A stretch of DNA of 64,000 bases from Ophelia neglecta (Eukaryota): assembly GCA_965285935.1 (NCBI GenBank), contig OZ260661.1:18786001-18850000 (forward strand), read 5' to 3'. The translations under genes were made by a program, and so were the position numbers. This document shows, one piece after another, positions 37,481-64,000 of this stretch. Numbering within the stretch: the stretch's first letter is position 1; each line of letters starts with the position of its first letter. The notes below the pieces were generated by a model. The model had not been told where the DNA came from, searched no databases, and was given only the letters and a program-made list of their open reading frames with translations.

Positions 37481-37818
37481 GGGACGGACCATTCAATATC
37501 TGGGGGGGGGGGGGGCGACAAATTTAAAAAAAAAATTGTTTGTTTCTGGTTATGCATAAAAAAAATTGTTTGTTTCTGACTCTGGAAAAATTAAATTGTT
37601 TAGTCTGATATTTTCTTTAAAATTTTTTTTTTTTTTTAAAGTTTGATCAAGGCTAGGGAAAAAATATTTGACAGAGATTTGTTAGAAAAAAAAATTGTTT
37701 GCTTCCCAGATAGGAAAAAATAAATTGTTTGTTTGTCCAAAGCTAGAAATTTTTTTGTTTCACTAGAAAATATTTTGTCCCCCCCCCCCCCCCCCCCAAA
37801 TATCTTATGGTGCGTCCC
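37481..37818. mobile_element. Tourist-like MITE (intronic)
   Basis: gggacggaccatt...atggtgcgtccc with TTA TSD. Confidence 0.92.
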
Positions 37819-39453: not shown

Positions 39454-39582
39454 GGGACGGACCATTCAATATCTGGGGGGGGGGCGACAAATTTTTTTAA
39501 AAAAATTGTTTGTTTCTGGTTATGCATAAAAAAAATTGTTTGTTCCTGACTCTGGAAAAAATAAATTGTTTGTCTGATATTT
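39454..39582. mobile_element. Truncated Tourist-like MITE in the ParB-like exon
   Basis: Left TIR only; the right part and ~55 bp of exon are deleted relative to copy 2 (53619-54016). Confidence 0.88.
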
Positions 39583-40243
39583 CCTCTGCAAATGCCCAGG
39601 GTCCAGGCATCTCAACCCATACAGGCCCCAGTGTACTCCCGAGAACGAGGGAAGACGTCTCAATCTTTGGCTTGGCCTCGACCAGCCCCTTTTCTTTCCT
39701 GACAACAACCTGAACAAGCAAACAGTGCAATTCAATTGGTAAAATCCACATAGAATACAAACTTGGACACAATGATTTCTTCTCATCGGTTTGTTCCATG
39801 AATTTGGTAAGTTCCATATTGACTCGAAAACGTGAGACGTATTCATAGCCTAAATCGGTTGTTCTAGATACAAAATACCTTATTAATAAATTTGATAATT
39901 AAATCAAAATTAGTATACATTAATGGTTCACGTGTCATGGTATGCAGAATATATATTGATTTGCTGATTGATATACATGTTTATATAAAATGGAAGGTTT
40001 AATGTATCTTTCATTATTTAAAAACAATGAAATTACTCACGTCTTTGTCATCATTATCTTCTGAAAAATCATAGATGCCCAATATTTCACCAGAGGTTCC
40101 TGCAACCATACAATCATTTTGCAAAAAAAGTTGGGCCAGTTAGAAAAGAGGATTATTTCTAGCACAGCAACCGTTTGATATCGTATTAAATTATGTAGTG
40201 AAGCGGAAAATGGTAGCAAAGAGAATTTAATAAGCAAATTACT

Positions 40244-42310
40244 AGTATTCGTAAAATGATGCTACTGAAATCATTATTCAACCAGCCCTAAAAGGTATCA
40301 TTCAACTCACATTAGTCACAGCCAGTTGTCCCTTGCCTGATTCTCCTATGCGTGAAGACATAGTGCTGCTAGTGCTCTCTTCATCACTGCGCTCTTCCAT
40401 CTTGACTCCTCTGTCTGCACTCGTCTGAAAGTAGCAATCGTCTCATTGGTAATCATTATGCCATTTCCAGATGTAGCTCATTTACAAACACTAGTTGGGG
40501 GTTGATACTTTTCCGCTGTTATCCGCCATTAAACTTTAGCTGAATATTGAATGTTTCTATTGAATCGATTTAAACAAGATTTTTTCTCCTTCAATAACAA
40601 TGGCCGGTATAGATCTACACCACAAGTCTTGGTTAATTTGCTGTATTGTCATTATTGAGCCTTCAGAATCCAAATATATTACATATAATTGCAGGCCTAG
40701 ACATTTGTGCCAAATTGTACATATAAATAAGGGAATGCAGGTCGATATTACAGACACTAGTGCAAATTTATAAAACCACCCCCCACCCCCACCCCCTGCC
40801 ACGAATCGGCTTTCTGGTCTGACCGAACAGATGCACCAAGTGGTACCCCGGGACACCCTTATTTGTGGGGTATGCCGTGTTTGCAGTGTTTCATCATTTC
40901 AATGCATCAAATCCCGTTGTTTAATTAAATGCACTTACTAATCATTTGTTGTCCTGGCCCCCCACACCCGGGACTTACTATATGGGGGATTTACTGTTTT
41001 GGCTGGGGTAATTTGAGGGAGTTCCCTTCACCTTGGAGGAATGTCTACATTATAAATTGGTGCATGTAGCTTCACAGCATGCAGCCTGGTTTGTGCACTG
41101 GCTACGCCTCAGCGTAGGCATTACTTGCCGGTACTGCTGTTCTTTGAGGATATATATATATACATATATACGATAATATAGTCTCCTGGGTGGGTAGGTG
41201 GGGACAACAAATGAATAGTTAGTGTATTAACTGATTAACGAGTGTTGAATTTCACTTTAAAATACCCAAAACAGGTTTTATTTTGGCCAATAGTGGCTAA
41301 TATTTGGCATTCTATAGAGAAAAATCTTATTTGAAAAAGTTTTGCAGCTTTACGAAACAATATTATAGTAAATTATCTGATTCTAAATAATAAACGTTTC
41401 ATCATTTATCGGCTACACTATAGGCTACGGATTTTGCAGCAATTTTTTTTATAAATTATCAGATTATTGTATAGACCCATAGAATCTAAGTGTAAAATGT
41501 AATGCACAAAATTGACCAATTCACGATCAATACCTGCCTATACAGTATATATACTGCCTAGTTTTATCACGTAGGGTCGCATATGATTTCTTTCAGGCCT
41601 TAGCAAATTAATTGATCAATAGTATTCGTAAAATGATGCTACTGAAATCATTTTTCAACCAGCCTTAAAAGGTATCATTCAACTCACATAAGTCACAGCC
41701 AGTTGTCCCTTGCCTGATTCACCTATGCATGAAGACATAGTGCTGCTAGTGCTCTCCTCATCACTGCGCTCTTCCATCTTGACTCCTCTGTCTGCACTCG
41801 TCTGAAAGTAGCAATCGTCTCATTGGTAATCATTATTCCATTTCCAGATGTAGCTAATTTACAAACACTAGTTGGGGGTTGATACTTTTCCGCTGTTATC
41901 CGCTATTAAACTTTAGCTGATTATTGAATGTTTCTATTGAATCGATTTAAGCAAGATTTTTTCTCTTTCAATAAAAATGGCCGGTATAGATCTACACCAC
42001 AAGTCTTGGTTAATTTGCTGTATTGTCATTATTGAGCCTTCAGAATCCAAATATATTACATATAATTGCAGGCCTAGACATTTGTGCCAAATTTTACATA
42101 TAAGTAAGGGAATGCAGGACGAAACAATATTATAGTGAATTATCTGATTCTAAATAATAAACGTTTCATCATTTATCGGCTACACTATAGGCTACGGATT
42201 TTGCACCACATTTTTTATAATTTATCAGATTATTGAATAGACCCATAGAATCTAAGTGTAAAATGTGATGCACAAAATTGACCAATTCACGATCAATACC
42301 TGCCTATACA
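40244..42310. repeat. Internal direct duplication including the putative first coding exon of the ParB-like gene (40244-~41540 vs 41621-42310)
   Basis: agtattcgtaaaatgatgctactg...gggaatgcagg and gaaacaatattatag...cctgcctataca both repeated; the second copy lacks ~0.6 kb from the middle. Confidence 0.9.
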
Positions 42311-44531
42311 TGGTAGTCACGCCCCTGAGGCCCCCTTGGCACAAGTATTAAAACATGGTTCTATTGTATTCCACTGCTTTACGGTTACGCTATCAGGCCA
42401 TGGACTGTCAAATAAAGCACGTCTGTCACGGTGGTCGCACACACAGAAAGATCACAACAAGCTGACAAACGGGCCCCTTGACATTTTCATGCGCGCCCAC
42501 CAGATCAAGAAAGTAGGCCTACGCCTATTCTTGTATTCTTTTTATCATAACCTGATAACTGGCCGAGTGCCTTGGCACCGCATATTTTACACACTACTGA
42601 ACTGCCTTCTTCGTGGTCACAGGGTTGCCAAGTTCGCGGGAAACTTTGCAGGCTTTTGGTCATTAGCAGGCATGCCAATTTGGCACAAGTTTTAATATGC
42701 CTGACCCTTGCTAAAACCTACCTGTCAGTTCATATCACTCGATTCTTTCCTACGGTTTATGGTTTTATCAGTGATTATTCTACAAACATATAAAGAATTA
42801 AAGAAAAAAATTAAAGCCTACCTTGATTGAACACTAGGAACTGAACAGCTGAAACACGTCCTGAGCTGCTGAGATGCGGACACATACGGTAGGTTATAAA
42901 TACGCCTACTCAGCTGATACTACGGCATGTGGCAGTGTGTACCAAGTCACCAGGTCACACGGAAGTTCCAAATATGTGGACGAGTTCAACTCCTTTCCTG
43001 GTAAATTTGGTCGCTGACCACATTGTCGAACGGCTCTTGACTCGTGCCACCAGAAAAGGTACCTTAAGGGTCCAGACATGGAAAATGAGATTTTGTCAGA
43101 AATGAAATCTCCAGGTTTCACTGATTTCAAATATATATAGTTTATGGGGTCTATTTAAATTTTCAGATGTAGAATTTGGATGATTTTTGAATGATGTTTG
43201 ATCTCAATGATTGATTATTTCACTGCTTTGATTAATTTGGACCCCTGTACCCCTCTAGTACTGAATTTTGTGGCGGAATTTTCAATGAATATGAACATGT
43301 TTAATCAATTTGATATATCTTTGGCAATATTTGATCAAGACTTCTATTATTTTCCATGGGGACATCTAACACAGTAAGGATGTGAACAGTGACATCACAG
43401 AGGCCAACCTGCCTGGTTGCCATGGTAACCAAGGCCCAGAATACTTAAAAGTCACATATTTTATTGTTTTAAGCTGATTTTTATTGTTTTATGTATTATT
43501 ATTTATAAATATTTTACAGCAAATTTCAGAAATGTGTTTTTGGCAACAGTTAGGGTAGGAAAACACCTAGATGGGCACTAGAGGGTCTATACCATGAGGG
43601 CTGAAAGTAGAATGAGAAAGGAATTCTGCAAAGTGCCAGGAAAAGTCTGCAGTAATTCAAGAAATTTGCAATGAATATGCATATTCGTATAGTATACTGT
43701 ATGTTCCTCCTGGTGTGGCAAATTAACATACTTTTACAGAACATGCACCATTAGATGGGGCTTGAATACAGTGACATCACACAAGGCAACCCGCATGGTT
43801 GCCATGGCAACCAGGATCCAAATCCATAAAAATCACTAGTTTTGCAACAATTTTGCACAGAAAGCAATGTTATCTTAGTTCAGATGGCATTAAAAATGAA
43901 AACAATCACAAAATAAGTAGGAAAACATGCCTTATTGTTAAATTTAATATGAGAAGTGGCAGTGGGGGCAGAGGCCAGAACTAGACTGCTCAGCCCTGAA
44001 AGTGGCTGGAATTTCTTTCAGGTTGTCATGGAGTATAATTAGAATACCTATTGTGAATTTGTATATATATTTTTCTGCTGCTATGTTTCTGCTGGATGTA
44101 TTTTACTGCAGGCTTGCCTAAAATGAGGTAGGCTATTGGAATTGAGAATAATGATATTGTCTACAATGAATTGTGTGGTTGTCATGGTAACCATGGCCAT
44201 GCATCCCCGAAAATATATATCAGTTCCCTCTTTTTGGACCTAACAGTTCTGTTTTCACAAGATTTAGCAAATCAGAAGGAGATATTGCCAAACAATATAT
44301 ACATTGTATTGGTTTATTTGACTGTGACCTAAGGCCTTGTGCCCGGATACATACATAAATACATTTAGTAAATGATGGTTACCACTTACATAGGGCTTGA
44401 GGTTTATAAATATCTGTAGTTACATGTATATAGCCTCTGACAGGTTTCACAAAATACATCTAGAGTCTATTCACCATTTTTTGAGAGAGTAAAAACTTTC
44501 ACACATTTAATACAATGTCCACAAATGTAGT

Positions 44532-47500
44532 TTAAGGGGCTGGGCACATAACATCTTTGTTTGCTGATGCAAAGAATGGTCTCAGCTTGTGAAATCTGTA
44601 TTCCTTCCTGTCTTGTGACAGGCCTCCTGGGTGAACAGTGGCTGGCTTGTCCTGAAGTAGGCGTTCAATTCTGGCATTCCTCTTCAGAAGGCGCCTAGTT
44701 ACCGGTTCTGAATCCGGGCCTTGGCTACACAGAACAAAACCAGGTTCGATGTCAGGCCCGAAGGAAAAATGGTGATACGCTGTGATCCCTGAGAAAGACC
44801 ATTAACAAGGGTTTAGAGAGAATCATTATGTCTCAAAAACGAAAGTTTTGAGACATACTGTTTTTGTCATTATTATTTTTTTTTATTTTTTTTTTTATTT
44901 TTTTTTTCTTCGGTGTTTTTTCGTAACAGTTTTCGGGGTGAAGACATGGTCCGGGGGCCCTGAAATTTTAGCGGTCCTCATGTCTTGGAAGACGTGAGCG
45001 AATCTCCCTCTGGCAAAAATTGGCGCCTAGCCAAAACGAAATGGCGGCCACTTTGTCGTTTTTTATACTTTTGCTGTCTTGACAAAACCGCTCAACGAAT
45101 TTCCGCGAAACTCGCGTGAGACAAGCATATAGTTTGCCCGACCTCAGCCCTGAAAAAAAATGGCCGACGAAATTTAACCTTTGGAAATTAATTAAGATTT
45201 CATAATTCAAAGTTCAAACTGCATTAAGTAAACTAAGCAAAGAAATGAATACATAAGCATGGATATAATGTATGCAAATCCTACTATATACAAATGTATT
45301 TATTCAAAAAGAAATTTCAATAATGAAAGGAATAAACAAACACACTTTTCTGGATAATGCTTTAAATAAATATACACCTTTTAGAGGCAAAAAATACTTC
45401 TCCAGGAATGGCTTCCACAACTTCCAAGGGAAATCTCTCAAGATGACTGCGCTGTTCCCCTTGTCACCATGAGCAGTGAAGCAGCTTTTTAGATCTTCCA
45501 CCGTTTCAATATCATTGCTGCAAATCATTAAACATGTGATTTAGTGTGGACTAAACCTTCCGAATATATTTACTTTTTAATAATGATTATACTATTTAAT
45601 GATTATACAGAGGGTTTCTTGTCAAACTGATGTTTAAAAGCTTTAAGGAAATACAGTGCTGTTTGTAATAATCATACTTTCTATACTTCCGTTTTCCCTG
45701 TCCAAAGCCTGCATCTACCAAACACCTAGTGTGCCCTGCAACCTGGAAATGCATGGACATCTTTCTATTCCTCCTCTGTAAATTTTTCATACACAAATAT
45801 GCCAGTGTGTATCTGTTCTTGTTTTGTCCTATAGAAATAGAGGGATAAAAACCAATTACTCCCTTAGAAAGTGGCTGCATCCAGTACATGTATTCATACA
45901 AGTGAACATTGGTTAAGTGAGCATTTTCATATGCCTAACCACATCCATCAAACTCAGAATTGAATGATTATATTTCTAACCTGTACAATTATCTGCATGA
46001 AGTGACAGCTCCTTATTATCGTCATCATACATGCTGAGATGGTGGTCAAGAATGCTCAATATAGTGTCTGGGCCGTGGGTTCCCCCTCCATCAGGCTGTA
46101 GTGACTCACTCTCTTCTATGAGGTAATTCATCTGTTTGTAGCATCCCTCAGATGCCACACCAAATACCTATGTTGAAGTGGAATATTCAATATTCACAAC
46201 TTAATGGTTAATCAATACAAATGCTGAAATATTCCTGATAAATTCATAATAATGTATTTTTTATACTATTTGAGAAATAACATTCTTATATAGTCATGAT
46301 AGAAATGGAAACAAACCTGCACTTTTATTGGATTTTCAAAATAAAGAGCACCTCGCTGACGGACATGTTGTGGGAGGGTACAAGGTTGTGCATAGTCAAA
46401 TGTCAGATGGTTTGAAGCACCATCCCTAGCTCTGTTCACCTGTGAAATTGAGAGATTGCTGCTGTCATTATGAACCATTACTTCATAAAAATGATTTTAA
46501 TTTCAAATCAAAAACAAAGCATGTGATGGAAGTTATATAGATTAAGCAGTACATGGCAGGCCATTTTTTTTACTTTATCAATGCAACCTTGGAATACATG
46601 CCTCATCATTATAGAAAATCCTTTCTGTTGATGCATCCTGCATATGTTTGTACAGGTTGTCTGCCAGAGATTTTTTCCTCATCTGTTTCTGCTTCCTGAA
46701 AATGTAATTATGTTCTCACACCTTGATATATTTTAATATCATTAAATGTATATTAATCATAAATTGTATCCTTCCTATACAGTTATATCACTGCCATCCA
46801 AGCCTGAATGCACAAGTTGTAAATTGGCACCTAATAATTAATTGCGAATGATGTGTGGGGAGAGTAGGATTGGAAGTTTTTAATTTTTTTAAACCCGCAA
46901 CTTGCAAGGCTTTGCAAAGGTATAAAATGCAGGAACTGGGGAAGCTTATATATGGGTTGGAGGGGGACAAAAACCAGTTCCCCCACCCCCAATCACCCTT
47001 TCAAATGGAATATGCCTTAATGTAAAATTAATAACTCATATTAACAGCTGTCCTTAGCGTCTCGCATTTGGTACAACAATCCATCCTTTGGGGGGAGATC
47101 TGTATATGTGGACAAACAGACTGCCATACATTCTGAAAGGCTGTGCGCTCAAACTTTTTTCTCTGTGCATCTATGCAGGCCTACAAAAAGTGTACACAGT
47201 GAATCGTTAAATTATGACTCATCTTCTGCTGGAAAGGAAACTTGTCTTTAAGGATAATCTATTAAAGTATATTAATCTTCACCTCTTTGTATTTTTGGTG
47301 GACTCTCAATTTGTCATAACCAGTTGGGAGGTGAACTTTGGCTAGCTCAGAGGTGTGGCCTGTAGTTGGCTGCTGCAGTCCCTTCGTTTTTGCAAAATTC
47401 TTCAGGAATTCAACAATAAATGTACAGTCTTCAAATGTCATGGTATGCCAAGGTCTTCTATTTTTGTTCCCATGAGTTCTGGGAATGCAACCTGAAAAAA

Positions 47501-49556
47501 ACACTTAAATGGTGTAACATCATTCAACAACATGATAATTTGTTTAACATAGCCTATGGCTCTAGTATAGTTTTACTCCCCATATTTTTGACATAAATAA
47601 TCCAATATATGCATTTACTGAACCTATTTAGGCTAGCCGGTTCCGGAAATCAAAAAGTACTTCATTCAGTACACCTTTACTGTCAGGATAAAAACATCAT
47701 TTTTATGTTTTATAAATGTAAACCAATTTATATTATATAATATTAAATATTAATTTATTAAGACAAAAAAGTATCACTGTACCATTTTCATTCATGTGTG
47801 ACCTTATATTTCGCAACTTCCTCTCTTTAATGTCATATGTTAGACAAAAAAAAGACTTGCAAATATCATCACCCTGAAAACTATAGCAATATCTGCTCCT
47901 TTTCTTTCCATTTGTTTTCTTCAAGGAGCTAGAAGTTAAAATGGAAAAGATGTTATTGCTATGTACTTATCGCTACAAATTAATACTACATTTCATGCCT
48001 CTTAATTTAACTACCGGGTATGTATGGTAACTGTTAACTGTTGAGACCTGCCATATGCCATATGCCATGGAACTTACCCACCTTAAAGAAATGTGATGTT
48101 AAAATACAATTCCTTCGTCTGTTTTATAAACTTGACGATTGTACTATTTATTTTTGGCTCAGTTGGTAACCTTAACTGTCAGTAGGCCATGCTAGCTTGG
48201 GACTGCATGTATTCCAATAAACTGAACATTTAAAACATACCTTCGAGCCAGAAGAACACCCATGATTAAGGACTCCCTGTGTGATGCTGGTGCAGCCCGA
48301 AGATCCTCAACATGGTTAATAATAACTGACAGATCAGTCTTGTCAACGCATCTTCAATTTAAGAACATTGTCAAGGCTTTGATAATAAAAGGGTAATAAA
48401 AAATAATTATTAATTTGTAGTCTGCAATATTTCCTAGTAGGAAGTAGTGAAATGTGCAATGCAATCATGTCTACAGGTTAGACAGTTATATGTAGGGACA
48501 TGGGTTGGCCCAAAAAAATTAAAATTGACTATTAAAAGATGAACACTACACGTAAACTATATTGAATGAGATTACCATTTACAAAGTCATGCTCTTAAAT
48601 CCTTGTTTTTTATAAACATAAAATAACAAATCAATCTAAATTACAGCTGATAACCTCACTACGGTAGTATGCCTTTACCTTTCTCTTTTAGCTTATTGTA
48701 CACAGCCTGCAACTCATCCCTGAGAAGATTCCCTTGGCTGCTTTGTGGTGGCTGGTCAAAAGTGACAGAATCTGCATCATGAGGCACTTCATCGTCATTT
48801 GCTTCTTCTTCAACCTCCTCGTCACTGTCCCATATATCAGTATCAGCATTCTCAGGAGAAAAAACCTATTTGAAAATTAAATTTTCAAAATATTGCTTTA
48901 AAATGCCTATGGATTAAACAGAAAAAAATATTCTAGGGCAGTTTCCATGCTGAGAACAATTTAAAGTACATCTGCTGCGCCTGTATTATGAAGTTCTTCC
49001 CCTACGCCATTAACTTAGTACTGTACTCCAAAAGATTCCACACATAATTTGATAGCAATTAAGCTATTTCAACAGTGATATGTCCATAAACAGATAAATT
49101 AGATAGGAATTTTCCTAAAATGGAGTGTAGATTGTCTTATTTCATCTGGAATGGCTTGGGAACCTATGGATGATTGGGAACTCTGACTCATTTCGGACAC
49201 ATAGGTTATAGTTCTTTGCTCCAGGACTTCGTCTTCACTGGGGGTCTGTTCTTGTTCCCATGAGTAATCGTCATCTTGTAAATTACCTGATAATTTAAAG
49301 TAGAAAACATCATGCTGGACATTTACCTACCTGTGGCTGCTGATTGTCAGCAGAGGGACCTGCTTGCATTAATTGCTAGGTCCTATAGATATTATGAACA
49401 CAAGGGAAAGATTTGTACTTAATTTGTGAAGAAATGAATCTGTTGTACTCACTGTCTTCAAGGTCTGTGATCTTCTGCAGAGCTGCCAACACTGCTCCTC
49501 TCTGTCTTGGCCTTACAAAGGTGGCCAAGTATTCGTCCAGGTCTGCATATTGTTCC
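44532..49556 (-). pseudogene. Multi-exon Sola-like transposase (about 13 exons; start exon unresolved)
   Basis: YSFQGDDICKSFF...ENG/CIPRTHGN; FQNVWQSVCPHIQI..DCCTKC; LTFDYAQ...LYFENP; NYLIEE; LHADNCTG/QNKN; FQVAGHTRCLVDAGFG; WKPFLEKYF; YHHFSF; GLSQDRKEY...KDVMCPAP*. Confidence 0.82.
44826..45230 (+). mobile_element. Probable 5' fragment of a second HINE-like element in the last transposase intron (also at ~59283-59690)
   Basis: tatgtctcaaaa-acgaaag-ttttgagacata palindrome followed by a T-rich microsatellite; no 3' end found. Confidence 0.5.
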
Positions 49557-51678
49557 TGGAATTACAGCATACAATTTGTTATCATATGGAATAATTCCAG
49601 ATAGCATGGCAAGCTAGCTGGTTTAGGCAATTTTTGCTGCTTTTGATTAATTTACCAAAATTTTATATATCTTGTGGGAACCGAGTTAAAAACTACTTAA
49701 CAAAAGTATAGGCCTATAGTGGACACATACTTTGTCATACCGATCACGGCCTTCCTGCAGGGTTAGCCTGGACATCATTGAAAAACTGGGAAACTGGAAA
49801 ATAGTTGAAAATATGCATTATACATTTTTTTTATCTTAAATAGGAGGCTCTTCAAAAGAAGAAGGCACAAGAAAAAGAACACCCCCTCCCCCTCGACCAC
49901 ATGCTGCAATAAAAACTGCATGATCATTGTGGCCTTACATAGATCTATGTTTTGGCATGCTGCATGTATCCCTGCCATAAGCTCATCATAAGCCTGACTT
50001 TAGACATTTTATCCATGGCAATGGTGATTTTGATACGACATAGCCCAAGTGACAGAAAAAGATTCACCAAATCAGACTGATGGTTCCAAAACATGAGAAC
50101 CGTCAACGTCTGTCCGTCACTGGCCTAATATATTTGATAATCCTGATAAACTGATAAAACGAGCCCCCCCCCCCCTCCCCCCTCGGGGCCGGGAAGGTGC
50201 CATCGGCCCATTGCTGCATGAGCGATAATCAGATAGATATCTGTTTGGATTTTTCGCTTAATGAAGCAAATTCCATTTAATAACTAGGATCACGGCCACA
50301 TCACATCATGTTTATCAAGTAAATTTCAACTAAACCACGCAAGTACACGCTATAAACTGATAAACTTCATGAATACGTATAACAGTATAGATCTAAGGTC
50401 CTAGATCCCGGGTTACCGGTACCTAGCATGCTAGTGCATATTGGCCTACCAGGTTGCCGTATGTCCCAAGATGCATGAAATTGAAGTCAAAAGCGAAGAA
50501 AACCATTTCAAAAATTATTTATTTATAGGCCTATGTATCTCCCCTTCACTAAATTCGGGTAGCAAACAAAATCACGGCCGAGGACCCCGCCGCCGCAAGG
50601 CCGCCCCAAGCGCCTGAGCACATGCATGTACGACATGAACAAAATGTAGGTCACAGAAGCACCTGCATCAAAACCTGCTGCGCGGGCTTACTCTGCCGGA
50701 ATTAGACATGAATTTATAATAAATATATGATACCACTTACCTTTAACAGCTGTATAATCTATAAACCTGCTCCTATTCTATTAAATCTGAGAATAAACAC
50801 CGAAATTCTGCATAACACGCACTCGCAAACAACGACTTGCAAGTTTTGCCGCCACGAATTTCACTGCGTAGACAAAATGACGTCATACCGCAAAATGAGG
50901 TCACAGAGCTTAAGGTACCTTTTCTGGCGACACGACAAAGAAATAATGACAAATATATCTGCATATATTTACTAGCCATTATTTCGAGATATTGTTAATT
51001 TTAACAGCACGTGTTGCACCAACACAATTACCGAAATCTGAAGCACAAGCAAACAACATTTTTAGTAATTATTTTCTGAAGAAAAATGACAAGTTTGATT
51101 ATCATACATGATCCAATGTGGGGTAAAATTATTTATTACAGATACTTACTATTTTTCATCATCTTCATCATAATCAGCTAAATGCTTTTTCTTAGCCCTG
51201 GCCTTAGCCCTAGGCTTGGCAGCCTTGGGCTTACTAGTAGCTGTGGATTCAACAGGCTTCTCTGCCAAATCTTTTTCCGACGTCTTCATTTGAGCGATAG
51301 TCCTGTACAAGACTTCCCTCGTTTTTCTATGTTCTCCTAGTTCCTGCTGAAGTAAACAAAGAAAGGTTTTTGTGATAAAAACCTGATGTCAACAACGTCC
51401 TTATTATTCTTTTTTTAAAACTAATATGAACCATTACTTACGTCTCGTTTCTCCTAGATGCTTTTAAATTCTTCATCTTTTTTTTCAGTCCACGTTTCAT
51501 TTCCTCCAAGATTTCCTTATGCTTCATTTCCTCCAAGGCTTTCTGATGTTTCATTTCCTCCAAGGTTTTCTGAGAGAGAGCAGCTTCCTGTCAACAACAG
51601 CTTACATATAACGGCCAAAGAAATTGATTCCACAGGCATCATTTTAACTCTACAATTTGTTTCATTATCGTCTTATTA

Positions 51679-52007
51679 GGGACGGACCATTCAATATCTG
51701 GGGGGGGGGGGGCGACAAATTTAAAAAAAAAATTGTTTGTTTCTGGTTATGCATAAAAAAAATTGTTTGTTTCTGACTCTGGAAAAATTAAATTGTTTGT
51801 CTGATATTTTCTTTAAAATTTTTTTTTTTTTTTAAAGTTTGATCAAGGCTAGGGAAAATATATTTGACAGAGATTTGTTAGAAAAAAAAATTGTTTGCTT
51901 CCCAGATAGGAAAAAATAAATTGTTTGTTTGTCCAAAGCTAGAAATTTTTTTGTTTCACTAGAAAATATTTTGTCCCCCCCCCCCCAAATATCTAATGGT
52001 GCGTCCC
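51679..52007. mobile_element. Tourist-like MITE (duplicate of 37481-37818)
   Basis: TIRs and TTA TSD. Confidence 0.92.
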
Positions 52008-53618
52008 TTATGTTAAAAGCGTAACAAAACAAATTATATAACAGAATATGTAAAGGGTGTTTAGGTCCCGAGTTGTTACAAGTGAAAGAAATACAAGTAT
52101 TCCTCATTCAGGTAGTTTTTCATTGGCTATTCCAAGCATTTGGTTTAATATTACAGTACACAGTCAAAGTCAGCTAATTTTGAGATACATTATGATTAAT
52201 GTGATCACTTTGATTTCGAAACTTACTAAACATTGCACCAATGTACTTAAAATATGGTCCTTACTTGCTGATCACGCTTGCCAGGCTTGTTGCCAAGGTT
52301 GTGACGTTCAATCCGCTGTTCTATCCACTCCGGTTCATTTTCTGGAGGGTAATCTGAAGTGTTAGTGCCCTTCCTCTTTCGCTTATTACTATGTTTTGTA
52401 CTATCACTGGCCACATTACTGGCACAAGAGTTAGCTTCATCATCCTGAAGGACTTGGTGTATCTGCTGCTAAGACACAAAAATCAAAGAACACGTTAAAT
52501 ATAAAGATGTAATCAAAAGAAAACAAATGATGCCACTGTCATCAAATTTTTTCAATTATAATCATCATGTTTAGGTTTAAATGTCTCAAATCTTTGGCAA
52601 ACAAACGTGTCACTTGCTAAACTGTGGCAAACGGCTCAGTTTATATCAGTTGCCTTCTAAATTAATTAACGCATACCTCAAAACTGTTAGATATACCAAA
52701 GCATGTAACTATCATGATATGATCGAATAAAAGATACCTTTAGGTTACTCTTGTCTCCTGTTTTTATGAATTGATCAAGCTGTCTTTGGAATTGGGCTGA
52801 ATTGTCACGTATAGTTGTCCTTAAGTCCCGGAATGAGGAAGCAGTTACTTGGTTAGCTGCCAAGTATGGCTCAATGGCAGCAAAATTCTCCTCACTGAAA
52901 CGGGCCAATAGCATAAGATTCTGGAGACGTTGAGTTTCATATCGCTTCTTTCCCTGAAGTTCCTTCTTTTCCTTTGGAGTAATTGTCTGCATTTTCTTCT
53001 TTTTAATATCACTGTCTGCCCCCTGTGGAAAAAGTACACATTTACAGTCAGTTAAATCTAACAAATTAATATAAAGTTTAAAGAAGCGCTGGGGTGGGCA
53101 TACAACTGTTTTGGTTTCAGATGACCATGCTACATGCATTGATTCCAAATTGGAACATTAAAAAATGTTTCAAAATAATAATACCAGTAAATTTGATATT
53201 AATAGCATCTGCAAATTGCAAAAGTAATCAAAACATAAAATTATGCAATAATATATTCATTATTTAAGCTATTTTCATAAAAGTTCCTTTTGCGGTTGCT
53301 ATGTATAAAAAATGTACATACTGCCACATTTAAGGTCCGGTAGATGATCTTGTTGTATTCAGTCATGCTGGTTGATTCAGACTTTGGATAATTTTTCATA
53401 ATTCGCCGAATGACTTTTATAATTTCCAGGTCAGTCATAGCTTTATGGACCTCATCTTTCAGGTTCTCTCGCATTGAGAGTCCTTCATACACATTGGCAG
53501 GTATTGTGGGGTATCTGTTTGAACCATATATTTGTCCCTGATTTTGTTGATGGCTGCAACTCTGTGGTTTCGTCAACCACTACGTTTATATGCCGCTTTA
53601 TGCTGTCTTCTACCTTTA

Positions 53619-53960
53619 GGGACGGACCATTCAATATCTGGGGGGGGGGGGGGGCGACAAATTTTTTTAAAAAAATTGTTTGTTTCTGGTTATGCATAAA
53701 AAAAATTGTTTGTTCCTGACTCTGGAAAAAAATAAATTGTTTGTCTGATATTTTCTTTAAAATTTTTTTTTTGTTTTTAAAGTTTGATCAAGGCTAGGGA
53801 AAAAATATTTGACAGAGATTTGTTAGAAAAAAAAATTGTTTGCTTCCCAGATAGGAAAAAATAAATTGTTTGTTTGTCCAAAGCTAGAAAATTTTTTGTT
53901 TCGCGAGAAAATATTTTGTCGCCCCCCCCCCCCCCCCCCAAATATCTAATGGTGCGTCCC
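53619..53960. mobile_element. Tourist-like MITE, complete, in the ParB-like exon
   Basis: TIRs and TTA TSD at 53616-53618 and 53961-53963. Confidence 0.92.
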
Positions 53961-56900
53961 TTAGTATTGTTATTGGCCGCATCAAAATGGGTTGTGATTT
54001 TAACTCCTTGTAAACCCTCTGCAAATGCCCAGGGTCCAGGCATCTCAACCCATACAGGCCCCAGTGTACTCCCGAGAACGAGGGAAGACGTCTCAATCTT
54101 TGGCTTGGCCTCGACCAGCCCCTTTTCTTTCCTGACAACAACCTGAACAAGCAAACAGTGCAATTCAATTGGTAAAATCCACATAGAATACAAACTTGGA
54201 CACAATGATTTCTTCTCATCGGTTTGTTCCATGAATTTGGTAAGTTCCATATTGACTCGAAAACGTGAGACGTATTCATAGCCTAAATCGGTTGTTCTAG
54301 ATACAAAATACCTTATTAATAAATTTGATAATTAAATCAAAATTAGTATACATTAATGGTTCACGTGTCATGGTATGCAGAATATATATTGATTGGCTGA
54401 TTGATATACATGTTTATATAACTTGGAAGGTTTAATGTATCTTTCATTATTTAAAAACAATGAAATTACTCACGTCTTTGTCATCATTATCTTCTGAAAA
54501 ATCATAGATGCCCAATATTTCACCAGAGGTTCCTGCAACCATACAATCATTTTGCAAAAAAAGTTGGGCCAGTTAGAAAAGAGGATTATTTCTAGCACAG
54601 CAACCGTTTGATATCGTATTAAATTATGTAGTGAAGCGGAAAATGGTAGCAAAGAGAATTTAATAAGCAAATTACTAGTATTCGTAAAATGATGCTACTG
54701 AAATCATTATTCAACCAGCCCTAAAAGGTATCATTCAACTCACATAAGTCACAGCCAGTTGTCCCTTGCCTGATTCTCCTATGCGTGAAGACATAGTGCT
54801 GCTAGTGCTCTCTTCATCACTGCGCTCTTCCATCTTGACTCCTCTGTCTGCACTCGTCTGAAAGTAGCAATCGTCTCATTGGTAATCATTATGCCATTTC
54901 CAGATGTAGCTAATTTACAAACACTAGTTGGGGGTTGATACTTTTCCGCTGTTATCCGCCATTAAACTTTAGCTGAATATTGAATGTTTCTATTGAATCG
55001 ATTTAAACAAGATTTTTTCTCCTTCAATAACAATGGCCGGTATAGATCTACACCACAAGTCTTGGTTAATTTGCTGTATTGTCATTATTGAGCCTTCAGA
55101 ATCCAAATATATTACATATAATTGCAGGCCTAGACATTTGTGCCAAATTGTACATATAAATAAGGGAATGCAGGTCGATATTACAGACACTAGTGCAAAT
55201 TTATAAAACCACCCCCCACCCCCACCCCCTGCCACGAATCGGCTTTCTGGTCTGACCGAACAGATGCACCAAGTGGTACCCCGGGACACCCTTATTTGTG
55301 GGGTATGCCGTGTTTGCAGTGTTTCATCATTTCAATGCATCAAATCCCGTTGTTTAATTAAATGCACTTACTAATCATTTGTTGTCCTGGCCCCCCACAC
55401 CCGGGACTTACTATATGGGGGATTTACTGTTTTGGCTGGGGTAATTTGAGGGAGTTCCCTTCACCTTGGAGGAATGTCTACATTTTAAATTGGTGCATGT
55501 AGCTTCACAGCATGCAGCCTGGTTTGTGCACTGGCTACGCCTCAGCGTAGGCATTACTTGCCGGTACTGCTGTTCTTTGAGGATATATATATATACATAT
55601 ATACGATAATATAGTCTCCTGGGTGGGTAGGTGGGGACAACAAATGAATAGTTAGTGTATTAACTGATTAACGAGTGTTGAATTTCACTTTAAAATACCC
55701 AAAACAGGTTTTATTTTGGCCAATAGTGGCTAATATTTGGCATTCTATAGAGAAAAATCTTATTTGAAAAAGTTTTGCAGCTTTACGAAACAATATTATA
55801 GTAAATTATCTGATTCTAAATAATAAACGTTTCATCATTTATCGGCTACACTATAGGCTACGGATTTTGCAGCAATTTTTTTTATAAATTATCAGATTAT
55901 TGTATAGACCCATAGAATCTAAGTGTAAAATGTAATGCACAAAATTGACCAATTCACGATCAATACCTGCCTATACAGTATATATACTGCCTAGTTTTAT
56001 CACGTAGGGTCGCATATGATTTCTTTCAGGCCTTAGCAAATTAATTGATCAATAGTATTCGTAAAATGATGCTACTGAAATCATTTTTCAACCAGCCCTA
56101 AAAGGTATCATTCAACTCACATAAGTCACAGCCAGTTGTCCCTTGCCTGATTCACCTATGCATGAAGACATAGTGCTGCTAGTGCTCTCTTCATCACTGC
56201 GCTCTTCCATCTTGACTCCTCTGTCTGCACTCGTCTGAAAGTAGCAATCGTCTCATTGGTAATCATTATTCCATTTCCAGATGTAGCTAATTTACAAACA
56301 CTAGTTGGGGGTTGATACTTTTCCGCTGTTATCCGCTATTAAACTTTAGCTGATTATTGAATGTTTCTATTGAATCGATTTAAGCAAGATTTTTTCTCTT
56401 TCAATAAAAATGGCCGGTATAGATCTACACCACAAGTCTTGGTTAATTTGCTGTATTGTCATTATTGAGCCTTCAGAATCCAAATATATTACATATAATT
56501 GCAGGCCTAGACATTTGTGCCAAATTTTACATATAAGTAAGGGAATGCAGGTCGATATTACAGCTTTGCAGCTTTACGAAACAATATTATAGTGAATTAT
56601 CTGATTCTAAATAATAAACGTTTCATCATTTATCGGCTACACTATAGGCTACGGATTTTGCACCACATTTTTTATAATTTATCAGATTATTGAATAGACC
56701 CATAGAATCTAAGTGTAAAATGTGATGCACAAAATTGACCAATTCACGATCAATACCTGCCTATACATGGTAGTCACGCCCCTGAGGCCCCCTTGGCACA
56801 AGTATTAAAACATGGTTCTATTGTATTCCACTGCTTTACGGTTACGCTATCAGGCCATGGACTGTCAAATAAAGCACGTCTGTCACGGTGGTCGCACACA

Positions 56901-57498
56901 CAGAAAGATCACAACAAGCTGACAAACGGGCCCCTTGACATTTTCATGCGCGCCCACCAGATCAAGAAAGTAGGCCTACGCCTATTCTTGTATTCTTTTT
57001 ATCATAACCTGATAACTGGCCGAGTGCCTTGGCACCGCATATTTTACACACTACTGAACTGCCTTCTTCGTGGTCACAGGGTTGCCAAGTTCGCGGGAAA
57101 CTTTGCAGGCTTTTGGTCATTAGCAGGCATGCCAATTTGGCACAAGTTTTAATATGCCTGACCCTTGCTAAAACCTACCTGTCAGTTCATATCACTCGAT
57201 TCTTTCCTACGGTTTATGGTTTTATCAGTGATTATTCTACAAACATATAAAGAATTAAAGAAAAAAATTAAAGCCTACCTTAATTGAACACTAGGAACTG
57301 AACAGCTGAAACACGTCCTGAGCTGCTGAGATGCGGACACATACGGTAGGTTATAAATACGCCTACTCAGCTGATACTACGGCATGTGGCAGTGTGTACC
57401 AAGTCACCAGGTCACACGGAAGTTCCAAATATGTGGACGAGTTCAACTCCTTTCCTGGTAAATTTGGTCGCTGACCACATTGTCGAACGGCTCTTGAC

Positions 57499-59330
57499 TC
57501 GTGCCACCAGAAAAGGTACCTTAAGGGTCCAGACATGGAAAATGAGATTTTGTCAGAAATGAAATCTCCAGGTTTCACTGATTTCAAATATATATAGTTT
57601 ATGGGGTCTATTTAAATTTTCAGATGTAGAATTTGGATGATTTTTGAATGATGTTTGATCTCAATGATTGATTATTTCACTGCTTTGATTAATTTGGACT
57701 CCTGTACCCCTCTAGTACTGAATTTTGTGGCGGAATTTTCAATGAATATGAACATGTTTAATCAATTTGATATATCTTTGGCAATATTTGATCAAGACTT
57801 CTATTATTTTCCATGGGGACATCTAACACAGTAAGGATGTGAACAGTGACATCACAGAGGCCAACCTGCCTGGTTGCCATGGTAACCAAGGCCCAGAATA
57901 CTTAAAAGTCACATATTTTATTGTTTTAAGCTGATTTTTATTGTTTTATGTATTATTATTTATAAATATTTTACAGCAAATTTCAGAAATGTGTTTTTGG
58001 CAACAGTTAGGGTAGGAAAACACCTAGATGGGCACTAGAGGGTCTATACCATGAGGGCTGAAAGTAGAATGAGAAAGGAATTCTGCAAAGTGCCAGGAAA
58101 AGTCTGCAGTAATTCAAGAAATTTGCAATGAATATGCATATTCGTATAGTATACTGTATGTTCCTCCTGGTGTGGCAAATTAACATACTTTTACAGAACA
58201 TGCACCATTAGATGGGGCTTGAATACAGTGACATCACACAAGGCAACCCGCATGGTTGCCATGGCAACCAGGATCCAAATCCATAAAAATCACTAGTTTT
58301 GCAACAATTTTGCACAGAAAGCAATGTTATCTTAGTTCAGATGGCATTAAAAATGAAAACAATCACAAAATAAGTAGGAAAACATGCCTTATTGTTAAAT
58401 TTAATATGAGAAGTGGCAGTGGGGGCAGAGGCCAGAACTAGACTGCTCAGCCCTGAAAGTGGCTGGAATTTCTTTCAGGTTGTCATGGAGTATAATTAGA
58501 ATACCTATTGTGAATTTGTATATATATTTTTCTGCTGCTATGTTTCTGCTGGATGTATTTTACTGCAGGCTTGCCTAAAATGAGGTAAGCTATTGGAATT
58601 GAGAATAATGATATTGTCTACAATGAATTGTGTGGTTGTCATGGTAACCATGGCCATGCATCCCCGAAAATATATATCAGTTCCCTCTTTTTGGACCTAA
58701 CAGTTCTGTTTTCACAAGATTTAGCAAATCAGAAGGAGATATTGCCAAACAATATATACATTGTATTGGTTTATTTGACTGTGACCTAAGGCCTTGTGCC
58801 CGGATACATACATAAATACATTTAGTAAATGATGGTTACCACTTACATAGGGCTTGAGGTTTATAAATATCTGTAGTTACATGTATATAGCCTCTGACAG
58901 GTTTCACAAAATACATCTAGAGTCTATTCACCATTTTTTGAGAGAGTAAAAACTTTCACACATTTAATACAATGTCCACAAATGTAGTTTAAGGGGCTGG
59001 GCACATAACATCTTTGTTTGCTGATGCAAAGAATGGTCTCAGCTTGTGAAATCTGTATTCCTTCCTGTCTTGTGACAGGCCTCCTGGGTGAACAGTGGCT
59101 GGCTTGTCCTGAAGTAGGCGTTCAATTCTGGCATTCCTCTTCAGAAGGCGCCTAGTTACCGGTTCTGAATCCGGGCCTTGGCTACACAGAACAAAACCAG
59201 GTTCGATGTCAGGCCCGAAGGAAAAATGGTGATACGCTGTGATCCCTGAGAAAGACCATTAACAAGGGTTTAGAGAGAATCATTATGTCTCAAAAACGAA
59301 AGTTTTGAGACATACTGTTTTTGTCATTAT

Positions 59331-59362
<32 letters not shown>

Positions 59363-62300
59363 CTTCGGTGTTTTTTCGTAACAGTTTTCGGGGTGAAGAC
59401 ATGGTCCGGGGGCCCTGAAATTTTAGCGGTCCTCATGTCTTGGAAGACGTGAGCGAATCTCCCTCTGGCAAAAATTGGCGCCTAGCCAAAACGAAATGGC
59501 GGCCACTTTGTCGTTTTTTATACTTTTGCTGTCTTGACAAAACAGCTCAACGAATTTCCGCGAAACTCGCGTGAGACAAGCATATAGTTTGCCCGACCTC
59601 AGCCCTGAAAAAAAATGGCCGACGAAATTTAACCTTTGGAAATTAATTAAGATTTCATAATTCAAAGTTCAAACTGCATTAAGTAAACTAAGCAAAGAAA
59701 TGAATACATAAGCATGGATATAATGTATGCAAATCCTACTATATACAAATGTATTTATTCAAAAAGAAATTTCAATAATGAAAGGAATAAACAAACACAC
59801 TTTTCTGGATAATGCTTTAAATAAATATACACCTTTTAGAGGCAAAAAATACTTCTCCAGGAATGGCTTCCACAACTTCCAAGGGAAATCTCTCAAGATG
59901 ACTGCGCTGTTCCCCTTGTCACCATGAGCAGTGAAGCAGCTTTTTAGATCTTCCACCGTTTCAATATCATTGCTGCAAATCATTAAACATGTGATTTAGT
60001 GTGGACTAAACCTTCCGAATATATTTACTTTTTAATAATGATTATACTATTTAATGATTATACAGAGGGTTTCTTGTCAAACTGATGTTTAAAAGCTTTA
60101 AGGAAATACAGTGCTGTTTGTAATAATCATACTTTCTATACTTCCGTTTTCCCTGTCCAAAGCCTGCATCTACCAAACACCTAGTGTGCCCTGCAACCTG
60201 GAAATGCATGGACATCTTTCTATTCCTCCTCTGTAAATTTTTCATACACAAAAATGCCAGTGTGTATCTGTTCTTGTTTTGTCCTATAGAAATAGAGGGA
60301 TAAAAACCAATTACTCCCTTAGAAAGTGGCTGCATCCAGTACATGTACTGTACATGTACAGTACTGTCAGGATAAAAACATCATTTTTATGTTTTATAAA
60401 TGTAAACCAATTTATATTATATAATATTAAATATTAATTTATTAAGACAAAAAAGTATCACTGTACCATTTTCATTCATGTGTGACCTTATATTTCGCAA
60501 CTTCCTCTCTTTAATGTCATATGTTAGACAAAAAAAAGACTTGCAAATATCATCACCCTGAAAACTATAGCAATATCTGCTCCTTTTCTTTCCATTTGTT
60601 TTCTTCAAGGAGCTAGAAGTTAAAATGGAAAAGATGTTATTGCTATGTACTTATCGCTACAAATTAATACTACATTTCATGCCTCTTACTTTAACTACCG
60701 GGTATGTATGGTAACTGTTAACTGTTGAGACCTGCCATATGCCATATGCCATGGAACTTACCCACCTTAAAGAAATGTGATGTTAAAATACAATTCCTTC
60801 GTCTGTTTTATAAAATTGACGATTGTACTATTTATTTTTGGCTCAGTTGGTAACCTTAACTGTCAGTAGGCCATGCTAGCTTGGGACTGCATGTATTCCA
60901 ATAAACTGAACATTTAAAACATACCTTCGAGCCAGAAGAACACCCATGATTAAGGACTCCCTGTGTGATGCTGGTGCAGCCCGAAGATCCTCAACATGGT
61001 TAATAATAACTGACAGATCAGTCTTGTCAACGCATCTTTGTTTGCAACAGCCTTCAATTAAGAACATTGTCAAGGCTTTGTTAATAAAAGGGTAATAAAA
61101 AATAATTATTAATTTGTAGTCTGCAATATTTCCTAGTAGGAAGTAGTGAAATGTGCAATGCAATCATGTCTACAGGTTAGACAGTTATATGTAGGGACAT
61201 GGGTTGGCCCAAAAAAATTAAAATTGACTATTAAAAGATGAACACTACACGTAAACTATATTGAATGAGATTACCATTTACAAAGTCATGCTCTTAAATC
61301 CTTGTTTTTATAAACATAAAATAACAAATCAATCTAAATTACAGCTGATAACCTCACTACGGTAGTATGCCTTTACCTTTCTCTTTTAGCTTATTGTACA
61401 CAGCCTGCAACTCATCCCTGAGAAGATTCCCTTGGCTGCTTTGTGGTGGCTGGTCAAAAGTGACAGAATCTGCATCATGAGGCACTTCATCGTCATTTGC
61501 TTCTTCTTCAACCTCCTCGTCACTGTCCCATATATCAGTATCAGCATTCTCAGGAGAAAAAACCTATTTGAAAATTAAATTTTCAAAATATTGCTTTAAA
61601 ATGCCTATGGATTAAACAGAAAAAAATATTCTAGGGCAGTTTCCATGCTGAGAACAATTTAAAGTACATCTGCTGCGCCTGTATTATGAAGTTCTTCCCC
61701 TACGCCATTAACTTAGTACTGTACTCCAAAAGATTCCACACATAATTTGATAGCAATTAAGCTATTTCAACAGTGATATGTCCATAAACAGATAAATTAG
61801 ATAGGAATTTTCCTAAAATGGAGTGTAGATTGTCTTACTTCATCTGGAATGGCTTGGGAACCTATGGATGATTGGGAACTCTGACTCATTTCGGACACAT
61901 AGGTTATAGTTCTTTGCTCCAGGACTTCGTCTTCACTGGGGGTCTGTTCTTGTTCCCATGAGTAATCGTCATCTTGTAAATTACCTGATAATTTAAAGTA
62001 GAAAACATCATGCTGGACATTTACCTACCTGTGGCTGCTGATTGTCAGCAGAGGGACCTGCTTGCATTAATGGCTAGGTCCTATAGATATTATGAACACA
62101 AGGGAAAGATTTGTACTTAATTTGTGAAGAAATGAATCTGTTGTACTCACTGTCTTCAAGGTCTGTGATCTTCTGCAGAGCTGCCAACACTGCTCCTCTC
62201 TGTCTTGGCCTTACAAAGGTGGCCAAGTATTCGTCCAGGTCTGCATATTGTTCCTGGAATTACAGCATACAATTTGTTATCATATGGAATAATTCCAGAT

Positions 62301-63631
62301 AGCATGGCAAGCTAGCTGGTTTAGGCAATTTTTGCTGCTTTTGATTAATTTACCAAAATTTTATATATCTTGTGGGAACCGAGTTAAAAACTACTTAACA
62401 AAAGTATAGGCCTATAGTGGACACATACTTTGTCATACCGATCACGGCCTTCCTGCAGGGTTAGCCTGGACATCATTGAAAAACTGGGAAACTGGAAAAT
62501 AGTTGAAAATATGCATTATACATTTTTTTTATCTTAAATAGGAGGCTCTTCAAAAGAAGAAGGCACAAGAAAAAGAACACCCCCTCCCCCTCGACCACAT
62601 GCTGCAATAAAAACTGCATGATCATTGTGGCCTTACATAGATCTATGTTTTGGCATGCTGCATGTATCCCTGCCATAAGCTCATCATAAGCCTGACTTTA
62701 GACATTTTATCCATGGCAATGGTGATTTTGATACGACATAGCCCAAGTGACAGAAAAAGATTCACCAAATCAGACTGATGGTTCCAAAACATGAGAACCG
62801 TCAACGTCTGTCCGTCACTGGCCTAATATATTTGATAATCCTGATAAACTGATAAAACGAGCCCCCCCCCCTCCCCCCTCGGGGCCGGGAAGGTGCCATC
62901 GGCCCATTGCTGCATGAGCGATAATCAGATAGATATCTGTTTGGATTTTTCGCTTAATGAAGCAAATTCCATTTAATAACTAGGATCACGGCCACATCAC
63001 ATCATGTTTATCAAGTAAATTTCAACTAAACCACGCAAGTACACGCTATAAACTGATAAACTTCATGAATACGTATAACAGTATAGATCTAAGGTCCTAG
63101 ATCCCGGGTTACCGGTACCTAGCATGCTAGTGCATATTGGCCTACCAGGTTGCCGTATGTCCCAAGATGCATGAAATTGAAGTCAAAAGCGAAGAAAACC
63201 ATTTCAAAAATTATTTATTTATAGGCCTATGTATCTCCCCTTCACTAAATTCGGGTAGCAAACAAAATCACGGCCGAGGACCCCGCCGCCGCAAGGCCGC
63301 CCCAAGCGCCTGAGCACATGCATGTACGACATGAACAAAATGTAGGTCACAGAAGCACCTGCATCAAGACCTGCTGCGCGGGCTTACTCTGCCGAAATTA
63401 GACATGAATTTATAATAAATATATGATACCACTTACCTTTAACAGCTGTATAATCTATAAACCTGCTCCTATTCTATTAAATCTGAGAATAAACACCGAA
63501 ATTCTGCATAACACGCACTCGCAAACAACGACTTGCAAGTTTTGCCGCCACGAATTTCACTGCGTAGACAAAATGACGTCATACCGCAAAATGAGGTCAC
63601 AGAGCTTAAGGTACCTTTTCTGGCGACACGA
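57499..63631 (-). mobile_element. Sola-like transposon, copy 2, with internal deletion of the central transposase exons
   Basis: Same TIRs; sequence equivalent to 45893-47677 is missing at ~60348. Confidence 0.8.
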
Positions 63632-64000
63632 CAAAGAAATAATGACAAATATATCTGCATATATTTACTAGCCATTATTTCGAGATATTGTTAATTTTAA
63701 CAGCACGTGTTGCACCAACACAATTACCGAAATCTGAAGCACAAGCAAACAACATTTTTAGTAATTATTTTCTGAAGAAAAATGACAAGTTTGATTATCA
63801 TACATGATCCAATGTGGGGTAAAATTATTTATTACAGATACTTACTATTTTTCATCATCTTCATCATAATCAGCTAAATGCTTTTTCTTAGCCCTGGCCT
63901 TAGCCCTAGGCTTGGCAGCCTTGGGCTTACTAGTAGCTGTGGATTCAACAGGCTTCTCTGCCAAATCTTTTTCCGACGTCTTCATTTGAGCGATAGTCCT
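63631..64000. repeat. Start of tandem unit 3 (runs off the window)
   Basis: Same TIR|acaaagaaat junction; shares unit-2 variants (cagctaaatgc, ggcagcc). Confidence 0.95.

Follow-up and report, generated by a model that had tools for sequence, protein, structure and literature searches.

A probable pseudogenised exon of an animal ParB/sulfiredoxin-fold gene family, amplified beside a DNA transposon in Ophelia neglecta

In a stretch of 64,000 nucleotides from the genome of Ophelia neglecta (the window; G000:C1:18786001-18850000), the minus strand at 53322-54142 very probably carries a pseudogenised exon of a multi-exon gene. The gene would belong to an unnamed, apparently mollusc-centred animal family whose N-terminal domain has the ParB/sulfiredoxin fold (ParB_N, also called the 'ParB-CTPase' fold), and a piece of it has been amplified together with a transposable element. 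An original prediction, made from the letters of the window, had described a hidden intron-containing gene at this place, disrupted by a miniature inverted-repeat transposable element (MITE) and three small frameshifts, and had proposed that a large mobile element carries it as cargo or as an accessory gene. The features on which our analysis is centred are as follows.

53322 to 54142, minus strand: exon with the ParB/sulfiredoxin (Srx) fold in amplicon copy 2, recognised from its translation, its alignment to a paralogous exon and its profile matches
39133 to 39709, minus strand: the same exon in amplicon copy 1, with the same +1, -1 and +2 changes as copy 2
53619 to 53960, no strand assigned: MITE of 342 bp with terminal inverted repeats, between the two copies of a TAA duplication (53616-53618 and 53961-53963)

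A three-frame translation of the minus strand over 53300-54300 gives all the peptide pieces quoted in the original prediction, in the order in which it had placed them. The genome (762 Mb in 223 contigs) was searched for paralogues, and lesions were placed by aligning the nucleotides of copy 2 to the best-preserved paralogous exon, L005:1237-1665 on contig C3. The exon of copy 2 is bordered by an acceptor (AG, 54144-54143) and a donor (GTATGT, starting at 53321); within these borders it has gained one nucleotide near 54073, a 345-nt insert composed of the MITE and one TAA target-site copy, and two nucleotides (AT) at 53530-53531, and it has lost one nucleotide near 53571, which is the G of the Gly codon in D-G-N-H-R, and 24 nucleotides, in frame, near 53481. 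This alignment bears out the three frameshifts, the MITE coordinates and the G that had been restored by assuming a one-nucleotide deletion. The original prediction had also proposed a search for intact paralogues with DGNHR, and exons with an uninterrupted frame do occur in the same genome, in the frame that had been deduced, and read DGNHR where copy 2 has lost the G. Copy 1 keeps the 24 nucleotides together with an in-frame TAA, the stop previously read in 'LIEA*TLS', and a 260-bp deletion has removed half of its MITE and 55 bp of the exon; of the lesions of copy 1, at least the in-frame TAA is also present in copy 3.

A profile of the family finds the window at 53579-53244 (E 9.9e-15) and at 54282-53887 (E 6.7e-5), and, judged by these sequence scores, the likeness of the fragments to the family is not a product of chance. 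Because that profile contains a near-identical paralogue, the independent evidence for the fold is what the paralogue itself yields.

We searched 1.84 billion representative sequences exhaustively with phmmer. About 17 true relatives were recovered at 25-39% identity, all of them short, unnamed, single-exon open reading frames (ORFs) from Logan, ENA or NCBI assemblies, with no named protein among them. Long matches (P0003-P0006 and similar) were rejected as leucine-rich repeats that match 'TIPANVYEGLS', and P0027 as a CarboxypepD_reg repeat protein. A search for homologous proteins with a 252-residue ORF from a second group of paralogues, on contig C12, returned no matches. An alignment of 17 family members (A1) has five invariant positions, D75, G76, H78, R79 and N119, and at least 90% of the members also have R33. 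The position taken by the catalytic Cys in the GCHR of Srx is Asn in 15 of the 17 and Ala or Ser in the other two, never Cys; the reading of GNHR instead of the Srx motif is borne out by the DGNHR of the intact paralogues.

The fold itself was examined by structure prediction and shape comparison, the route that the original prediction had suggested. The AlphaFold2 (AF2) model of the family domain has a predicted local distance difference test score (pLDDT) of 88.2 and a predicted template modelling score of 0.82, and Foldseek places it against 29 PDB structures at E<=1e-3 (best E 5e-5, probability 1.0); among the top matches listed, all are Noc, ParB, KorB, PadC, sulfiredoxin or SbnI. A shape search of the ESM Atlas returns first an unnamed and wholly eukaryotic cluster of 119 members, whose commonest phylum is Mollusca, at a template modelling (TM) score of 0.80, followed by clusters annotated as ParB at 0.65-0.74, and a feature-based search of the same resource returns ParB_N and DUF6551 clusters. 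Sequence profiles point the same way: the PHROG family phrog_1033, 'ParB-like partition protein', matches 16 of the 17 members (best E 3.6e-12; paralogous exon 1.6e-5), and a profile run against 5.8 billion proteins extends to prokaryotic ones in which an identical D-G-N-H-R is accompanied by a helix-turn-helix (HTH) and an N6/N4 DNA methyltransferase. Aligned to these DGNHR-HTH-methyltransferase proteins by hhalign, the family scores a probability of 98.8% and E 1e-16. One of them, P0041, carries a precomputed PF02195 label, and our scan of it at E<=0.01 lists only methyltransferase and HTH families. Against the PDB, the family profile finds SbnI at E 7.5e-4 and a plant Srx at 0.014. A ParB/Srx fold, as originally proposed, thus emerges from the predicted model, its Foldseek neighbours, phrog_1033 and hhalign together.

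One could suppose that the domain arose by duplication and divergence of the sulfiredoxin gene of the animal itself, given that Srx structures are among the Foldseek matches (E 9e-5 to 4e-4) and that the family profile reaches the plant protein. We regard this as highly improbable: the catalytic Cys is absent from every member, the alignment extends over no more than 94-96 columns with Srx and over 130-136 with ParB, Noc and KorB, and both the phage ParB-like profiles (3.6e-12) and the DGNHR-HTH-methyltransferase proteins score far better than Srx.

Whatever the nature of the intact family members, the copies in the window are pseudogenes and have no function as proteins. Three further close copies lie on contig C3 and have only 1.6 kb in common with the window (53142-54709); they too are broken, L004 by an in-frame stop and L005 and L006 by a one-nucleotide deletion after ...RRIMKN. 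Disabling lesions are therefore found in all six of the close copies, and the idea of a living 'hidden gene' at this locus has to be abandoned. The ratio of nonsynonymous to synonymous differences per site (pN/pS) is about 1 within the copy groups and 0.4-0.7 between the window and the C3 copies, from small counts. Since the lesions are common to the copies, inactivation preceded amplification.

That the gene works and that its frameshifts are errors of assembly or sequencing is an explanation to which we give almost no weight. Two of the three frameshifts are single-base changes and the polishing quality of this long contig assembly is not known, but the +1, -1 and +2 changes recur in copies 1 and 2, and the damage includes larger changes as well, namely the MITE within coding sequence, the in-frame TAA or the 24-nt deletion, the 260-bp deletion of copy 1 and a frameshift in the last exon (see below). 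We also compared the window with DNA unitigs from three read sets, all made from one sample, which is that of the assembly itself, so that their independence is limited; some unitigs are identical to the window over 54018-54155, a span that includes the +1 site. Unitig joints that skip exactly the MITE were seen as well, consistent with the MITE-free copies on C3.

The insert at 53619-53960 has the traits of a MITE: terminal inverted repeats, a 3-bp TWA target-site duplication (TAA), non-coding sequence and a high copy number. Its empty site is found in the paralogues and in a unitig joint that passes from 53615 to 53961. From the target-site duplication we take it to be of the PIF/Harbinger type (Tourist-like). 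Summed unitig depth over the MITE is about 1000 times that of its flanks, and the MITE family is thus very abundant in the genome; further copies of about 340 bp lie in the window at 10084-10373, 37478-37821 and 51676-52010. All four copies in the window have poly-G/poly-C beside the inverted repeats, and a TAA duplication was seen only at 53619-53960.

Outside the ParB-fold exon, the minus strand holds several other stretches that can be assigned to the same gene.

54474 to 54532, minus strand: putative upstream mini-exon of 59 nt encoding the acidic ...DFSEDNDDKD, with an AG acceptor and a GTGAGT donor, in phase with the ParB exon
52738 to 53022, minus strand: exon 2, Lys-rich at first and then with a conserved helical segment (L..ArF...., ..SsF..LR), joined to the ParB exon by a phase-0 junction
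52250 to 52468, minus strand: open frame with a basic KRKRK stretch, a putative further coding remnant recognised from the sequence
51152 to 51590, minus strand: two open frames of copy 2, one with a heptad-like EEMKH repeat and one with a Lys/Ala/Pro-rich acidic tail, putatively a coiled-coil and a Lys-rich exon
36340 to 36627, minus strand: last exon, beta-rich and possibly Tudor- or chromo-barrel-like, homologous to the last exon of the C12 paralogues

Each exon was searched separately. The most informative comparison is with the cluster of paralogues at 67.55-67.81 Mb on contig C12, which is 31% identical, also has D-G-N-H-R and includes a copy (L018) with an open exon of 252 residues. There, the ParB exon ends in ...HIAV before GTAGGT and the next exon starts with KDSRTRR; in the window it ends in ...LNVA before GTATGT and the next exon starts with GADSDIKKKK. 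The two introns have the same place in the alignment and interrupt the frame in phase 0. The exons that follow in the window and in C12 are homologues of each other (E 4e-5 to 9e-5), with a basic stretch and then the patterns L..A+[FWL].... and ..S.F..LR, and contigs of other species (L031, L057 and L058) also have this exon, close behind the ParB exon. Because the position and phase of the intron are common to such distant paralogues and exon 2 is conserved in other species, the sequences identify a genuine intron-containing gene family, in agreement with the animal gene that had been proposed. The putative mini-exon lies inside the 1.6 kb common to the C3 copies, and the two frames at 51152-51590 are out of phase with each other as read.

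The ParB exon looks intact in the C12 copy L018/L027, and at least one copy (L017) is broken and truncated. The cluster at C12:67754000-67793999 (L056, L027, L029 and L055) is pieced together like a mosaic from segmental duplications, some tandem and some inverted, of 98-99.6% identity. A copy at 74.4 Mb on the same contig (L038) was considered as a processed retrocopy and rejected, as it has kept intron sequence and was copied at the level of DNA, with an internal deletion.

The last exon occurs once at the locus, outside the amplified segment. The last exon of C12 matches the window over 36656-36426 (E 2.9e-4); compared with this homologue, the local exon has a shifted frame, and a TAG at 36419-36417 ends it prematurely. 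With it, and with C12 paralogues that have the same exon order, the postulated link of the ParB-like domain to Lys-rich parts and a C-terminal beta-rich exon is borne out. The AF2 model of this exon (pLDDT 59) has four strands and two helices; its top Foldseek matches, at E 0.4-1.6 only, are an N-terminal fragment of Tip60, SGF29 and the Tudor domains of PHF1/PHF19, and no Pfam family matches it. The modelled likeness to Tudor or SH3 domains is no more than a hint. More copies of the last exon lie on C3, C8, C36 and C143. Those at C8:12556968-12557219, C36:60279-60530 and C143:13851-14102 (L040-L042) are near-identical to one another, represent a version of 46% identity, and are open over 97 residues. 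No ParB-fold exon was found within 20 kb upstream of the C8 copy, and the C-terminal beta-rich domain may therefore occur in other gene contexts too.

Several points weigh against reading 53322-54142 as an exon of a ParB-fold gene family of this kind. For all members, every Pfam and NCBIfam model stays below its curated cut-off; the best values are 3.7e-4 for ddrB-ParB, 2.4e-4 for DUF6551, 3e-5 for DGQHR and 2.6e-5 for SbnI. At E<=1 PF02195 appears for none of the members, nor does TIGR00180 at E<=0.1; the Noc model TIGR04285 matches one member at 0.0043, the best TIGR03187 (DGQHR) match is at E 3e-5, with the first member at 17 bits against a cut-off of 58.85, and the best DndB match is at 4.2e-4. 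A Pfam scan of the raw window fragments gave no useful match, the paralogous exon has only weak matches to DndB and ddrB-ParB and matches Srx at E 1.6, and a phmmer search of the PDB with this exon returned only matches of E>0.1. The assignment to molluscs comes from one automatic ESM Atlas label. The exon junctions were placed from the genomic sequence, and 5' exons of the local gene, sought beyond amplicon copy 3, were not found, an unrelated transposase-like ORF being present there. Exon 2 looks like the second half of a ParB-type HTH, a likeness without statistical support: hhalign puts it collinear and directly after the match to the N-terminal domain, at a probability of 0.14%, and searches with it for this purpose gave no PDB or Pfam matches. 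Finally, nucleotide binding, DNA binding and a nuclear location are suggested by conserved positions and composition only. Because no curated model is reached, we file the domain in the ParB/Srx-fold superfamily, and not with PF02195, canonical ParB, Srx or DndB.

The locus owes its present shape to the amplification of a gene segment and a transposon together.

36737 to 43037, no strand assigned: 6.3-kb gene segment, copy 1, which recurs at 50935-57495 and from 63631 past the end of the window
43038 to 50934, no strand assigned: 7.9-kb DNA transposon with terminal inverted repeats (TIRs) of about 28 bp, with decayed ORFs on the minus strand and a weak DUF7869 match

In a comparison of the window with itself, 36737-51304 recurs at 50935-64000 with 98-99% identity, and a third copy, beginning at 63631, leaves the window and continues for about 6.2 kb outside it. 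A second transposon copy, with an internal deletion, occupies 57496-63630, and no further transposon follows the third gene segment; the core of the terminal inverted repeats reads ...CCAGAAAAGGTACCTTAAG. From 36737 to 64000 and beyond, the array has the order segment, transposon, segment, transposon, segment, all head-to-tail, and the right end of the transposon borders on sequence situated 6.3 kb downstream of the site where its left end is inserted. The array looks like a duplication by aberrant (alternative) transposition.

Two more copies of the transposon, 99% identical and with the same termini, are present at G000:C9:66089473-66096474 and C7:97171004-97178806, both without the ParB-like gene segment. 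As they end at the inverted repeats without the gene, the gene is not the cargo of this transposon; it is flanking DNA that was co-amplified with the element, and the original suggestion of a cargo or accessory gene fails on this point. That suggestion, taken to mean that the gene spreads with a large mobile element, could appeal to the DUF7869-like TIR transposon directly upstream in each amplicon unit, to the fragments of family genes scattered over several contigs, and to the long terminal repeat (LTR) retroelements that adjoin family members in contigs of other species. It is nonetheless very unlikely, and for the 7.9-kb transposon largely refuted. The C9 and C7 copies stop exactly at the inverted repeats; the C12 paralogue loci and the contigs of other species have no DUF7869 homology; a tblastn search with all open frames of the window against these same loci found only MITE matches; the C3 copies have just their 1.6 kb of gene DNA in common, with no common termini; and the clusters grow by local tandem and inverted segmental duplication.

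Some other repeats were noted in passing. Each gene segment of the amplicon contains a repeat of about 510 bp twice (54671-55186 and 56048-56563; 40243-40753 and 41620-42122; 97-98% identity), in what would be the intron upstream of the mini-exon. Elsewhere in the window are a tandem array at 4524-6300 with a period of about 308 bp and units that are 88-94% identical, a 463-bp direct repeat of 99.8% identity whose copies are 6.6 kb apart (11731-12193 and 18335-18797), and a run of 100 N at 31005-31104, either an assembly gap or a mask. Beside the gene fragment on C3, near 584 kb, a 143-residue ORF (L005 1894-2325, minus strand) presumably resembles the N-terminal part of a THAP9- or Harbinger-type transposase.

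The history that we propose for the exon of a decayed ParB-fold gene is as follows. The ancestral local gene would have read, 5' to 3' on the minus strand, through upstream exons, the ParB-fold exon, the Lys-rich and helical exon 2, and the basic and coiled-coil parts to the C-terminal exon at 36627-36340. It would first have acquired the frameshifts and the MITE, and later a 6.3-kb piece of it would have been amplified head-to-tail three times, together with the adjacent 7.9-kb TIR transposon.

For the intact members, such as those of the C12 cluster, we can suggest a mode of action. The conserved Arg, the D-G-N-H-R and the invariant Asn, which in hhalign align to the same positions of the prokaryotic DGNHR proteins, may form a nucleoside triphosphate pocket in the manner of ParB boxes I-III, the conserved Arg and Asn being the presumed equivalents of boxes I and III. 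In the nucleus, such a pocket could power a switch that depends on a nucleotide and works on DNA or chromatin; the helical segment may complete an HTH, the coiled coil may serve for dimerisation and the C-terminal barrel may read chromatin; the basic region and the coiled coil would point to nuclear localisation and dimerisation. Judging from these sequence features, we lean slightly towards a switch like ParB, Noc or KorB that is gated by a nucleotide and binds DNA or chromatin. As the main alternative, intact members might be enzymes, either SerK/SbnI-like kinases acting on a small molecule or a protein, or ParB-type nucleases: SbnI provides the best PDB sequence matches, through the DG-x-HR motif, SerK and DGQHR models of NCBIfam match weakly, and one member matches a PHROG 'nuclease' family. 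All of these enzyme-type matches are below curated cut-offs, however, the family lacks the C-terminal domain of SbnI/SerK, and a basic, coiled-coil and barrel-like tail better suits a chromatin protein, so that we consider an enzymatic role unlikely.

A wider and speculative scenario can be sketched, one that we consider less likely than not. Molluscs, and perhaps other invertebrates, would have nuclear proteins of the ParB-CTPase fold that derive from phage or plasmid ParB-like genes, independently of sulfiredoxin, and that later gained introns, a basic and coiled-coil region and a reader-like barrel; these proteins would act as nucleotide-gated clamps on DNA or chromatin, and their rapid local amplification and decay (on C1, C3 and C12) would reflect a part played in genome conflict, for example against transposons.

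A recent survey of the ParB-CTPase fold, in which EukProt was searched with PF02195 at its gathering cut-off, reported sulfiredoxin as the commonest eukaryotic representative (2025; PMC12704722), and in earlier work the only ParB-type HTH fusions mentioned are those of chlorophytes and chytrids (PMC4738411). Our literature search found no description of an animal ParB-like family. The present family lies below every curated Pfam and NCBIfam cut-off and would therefore have escaped the PF02195-based survey. Should its intact members bind nucleotide and DNA, they would offer a rare case of a ParB-type switch in animal nuclei and also a probable gene transfer from a prokaryote or phage to an animal, followed by domain accretion. 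The dead copy in the window is of value chiefly because it leads to the family, and because it illustrates how part of a gene can be amplified along with a transposon.

Of the systems with which the family can be compared, the canonical ParB/Spo0J, Noc and KorB proteins, which are CTP-dependent DNA clamps, are the best structural matches (130-136 columns; query-normalised TM 0.52-0.61), although sequence identity is only 13-20% and their box II reads GERR where the family has GNHR. The HTH and the C-terminal dimerisation domain of canonical ParB may be further differences. SbnI/SerK and DndB/DGQHR proteins place DG-x-HR on the same strand-helix element and give weak profile matches, but all matches are below curated cut-offs, their partner domains are absent, and the family has DGNHR and not DGQHR.

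Sulfiredoxin has the same core fold and the same placement of G-x-H-R, whereas the family lacks its catalytic Cys, aligns over about 135 residues compared with about 95, is multi-domain and multi-copy, and scores nearer to phage ParB. The phage and plasmid ParB-like proteins (phrog_1033 and phrog_4715) and the fusions of DGNHR, HTH and N6/N4 methyltransferase (P0040 and P0041) have the same N-terminal fold and an identical D-G-N-H-R, with the upstream Arg and the downstream Asn at matching profile positions and an alignment that extends into the start of the HTH. Compared with them, the animal family has introns, has Lys-rich, coiled-coil and beta-rich C-terminal parts in place of the methyltransferase, and would be without a ParA partner or operon context; a ParA-binding N-terminal motif, parS or an operon is not to be expected in a eukaryote and was not looked for. 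Phage and prokaryotic ParB-like proteins thus stand nearer to the family than Srx does, which suggests that animals acquired it independently of sulfiredoxin.

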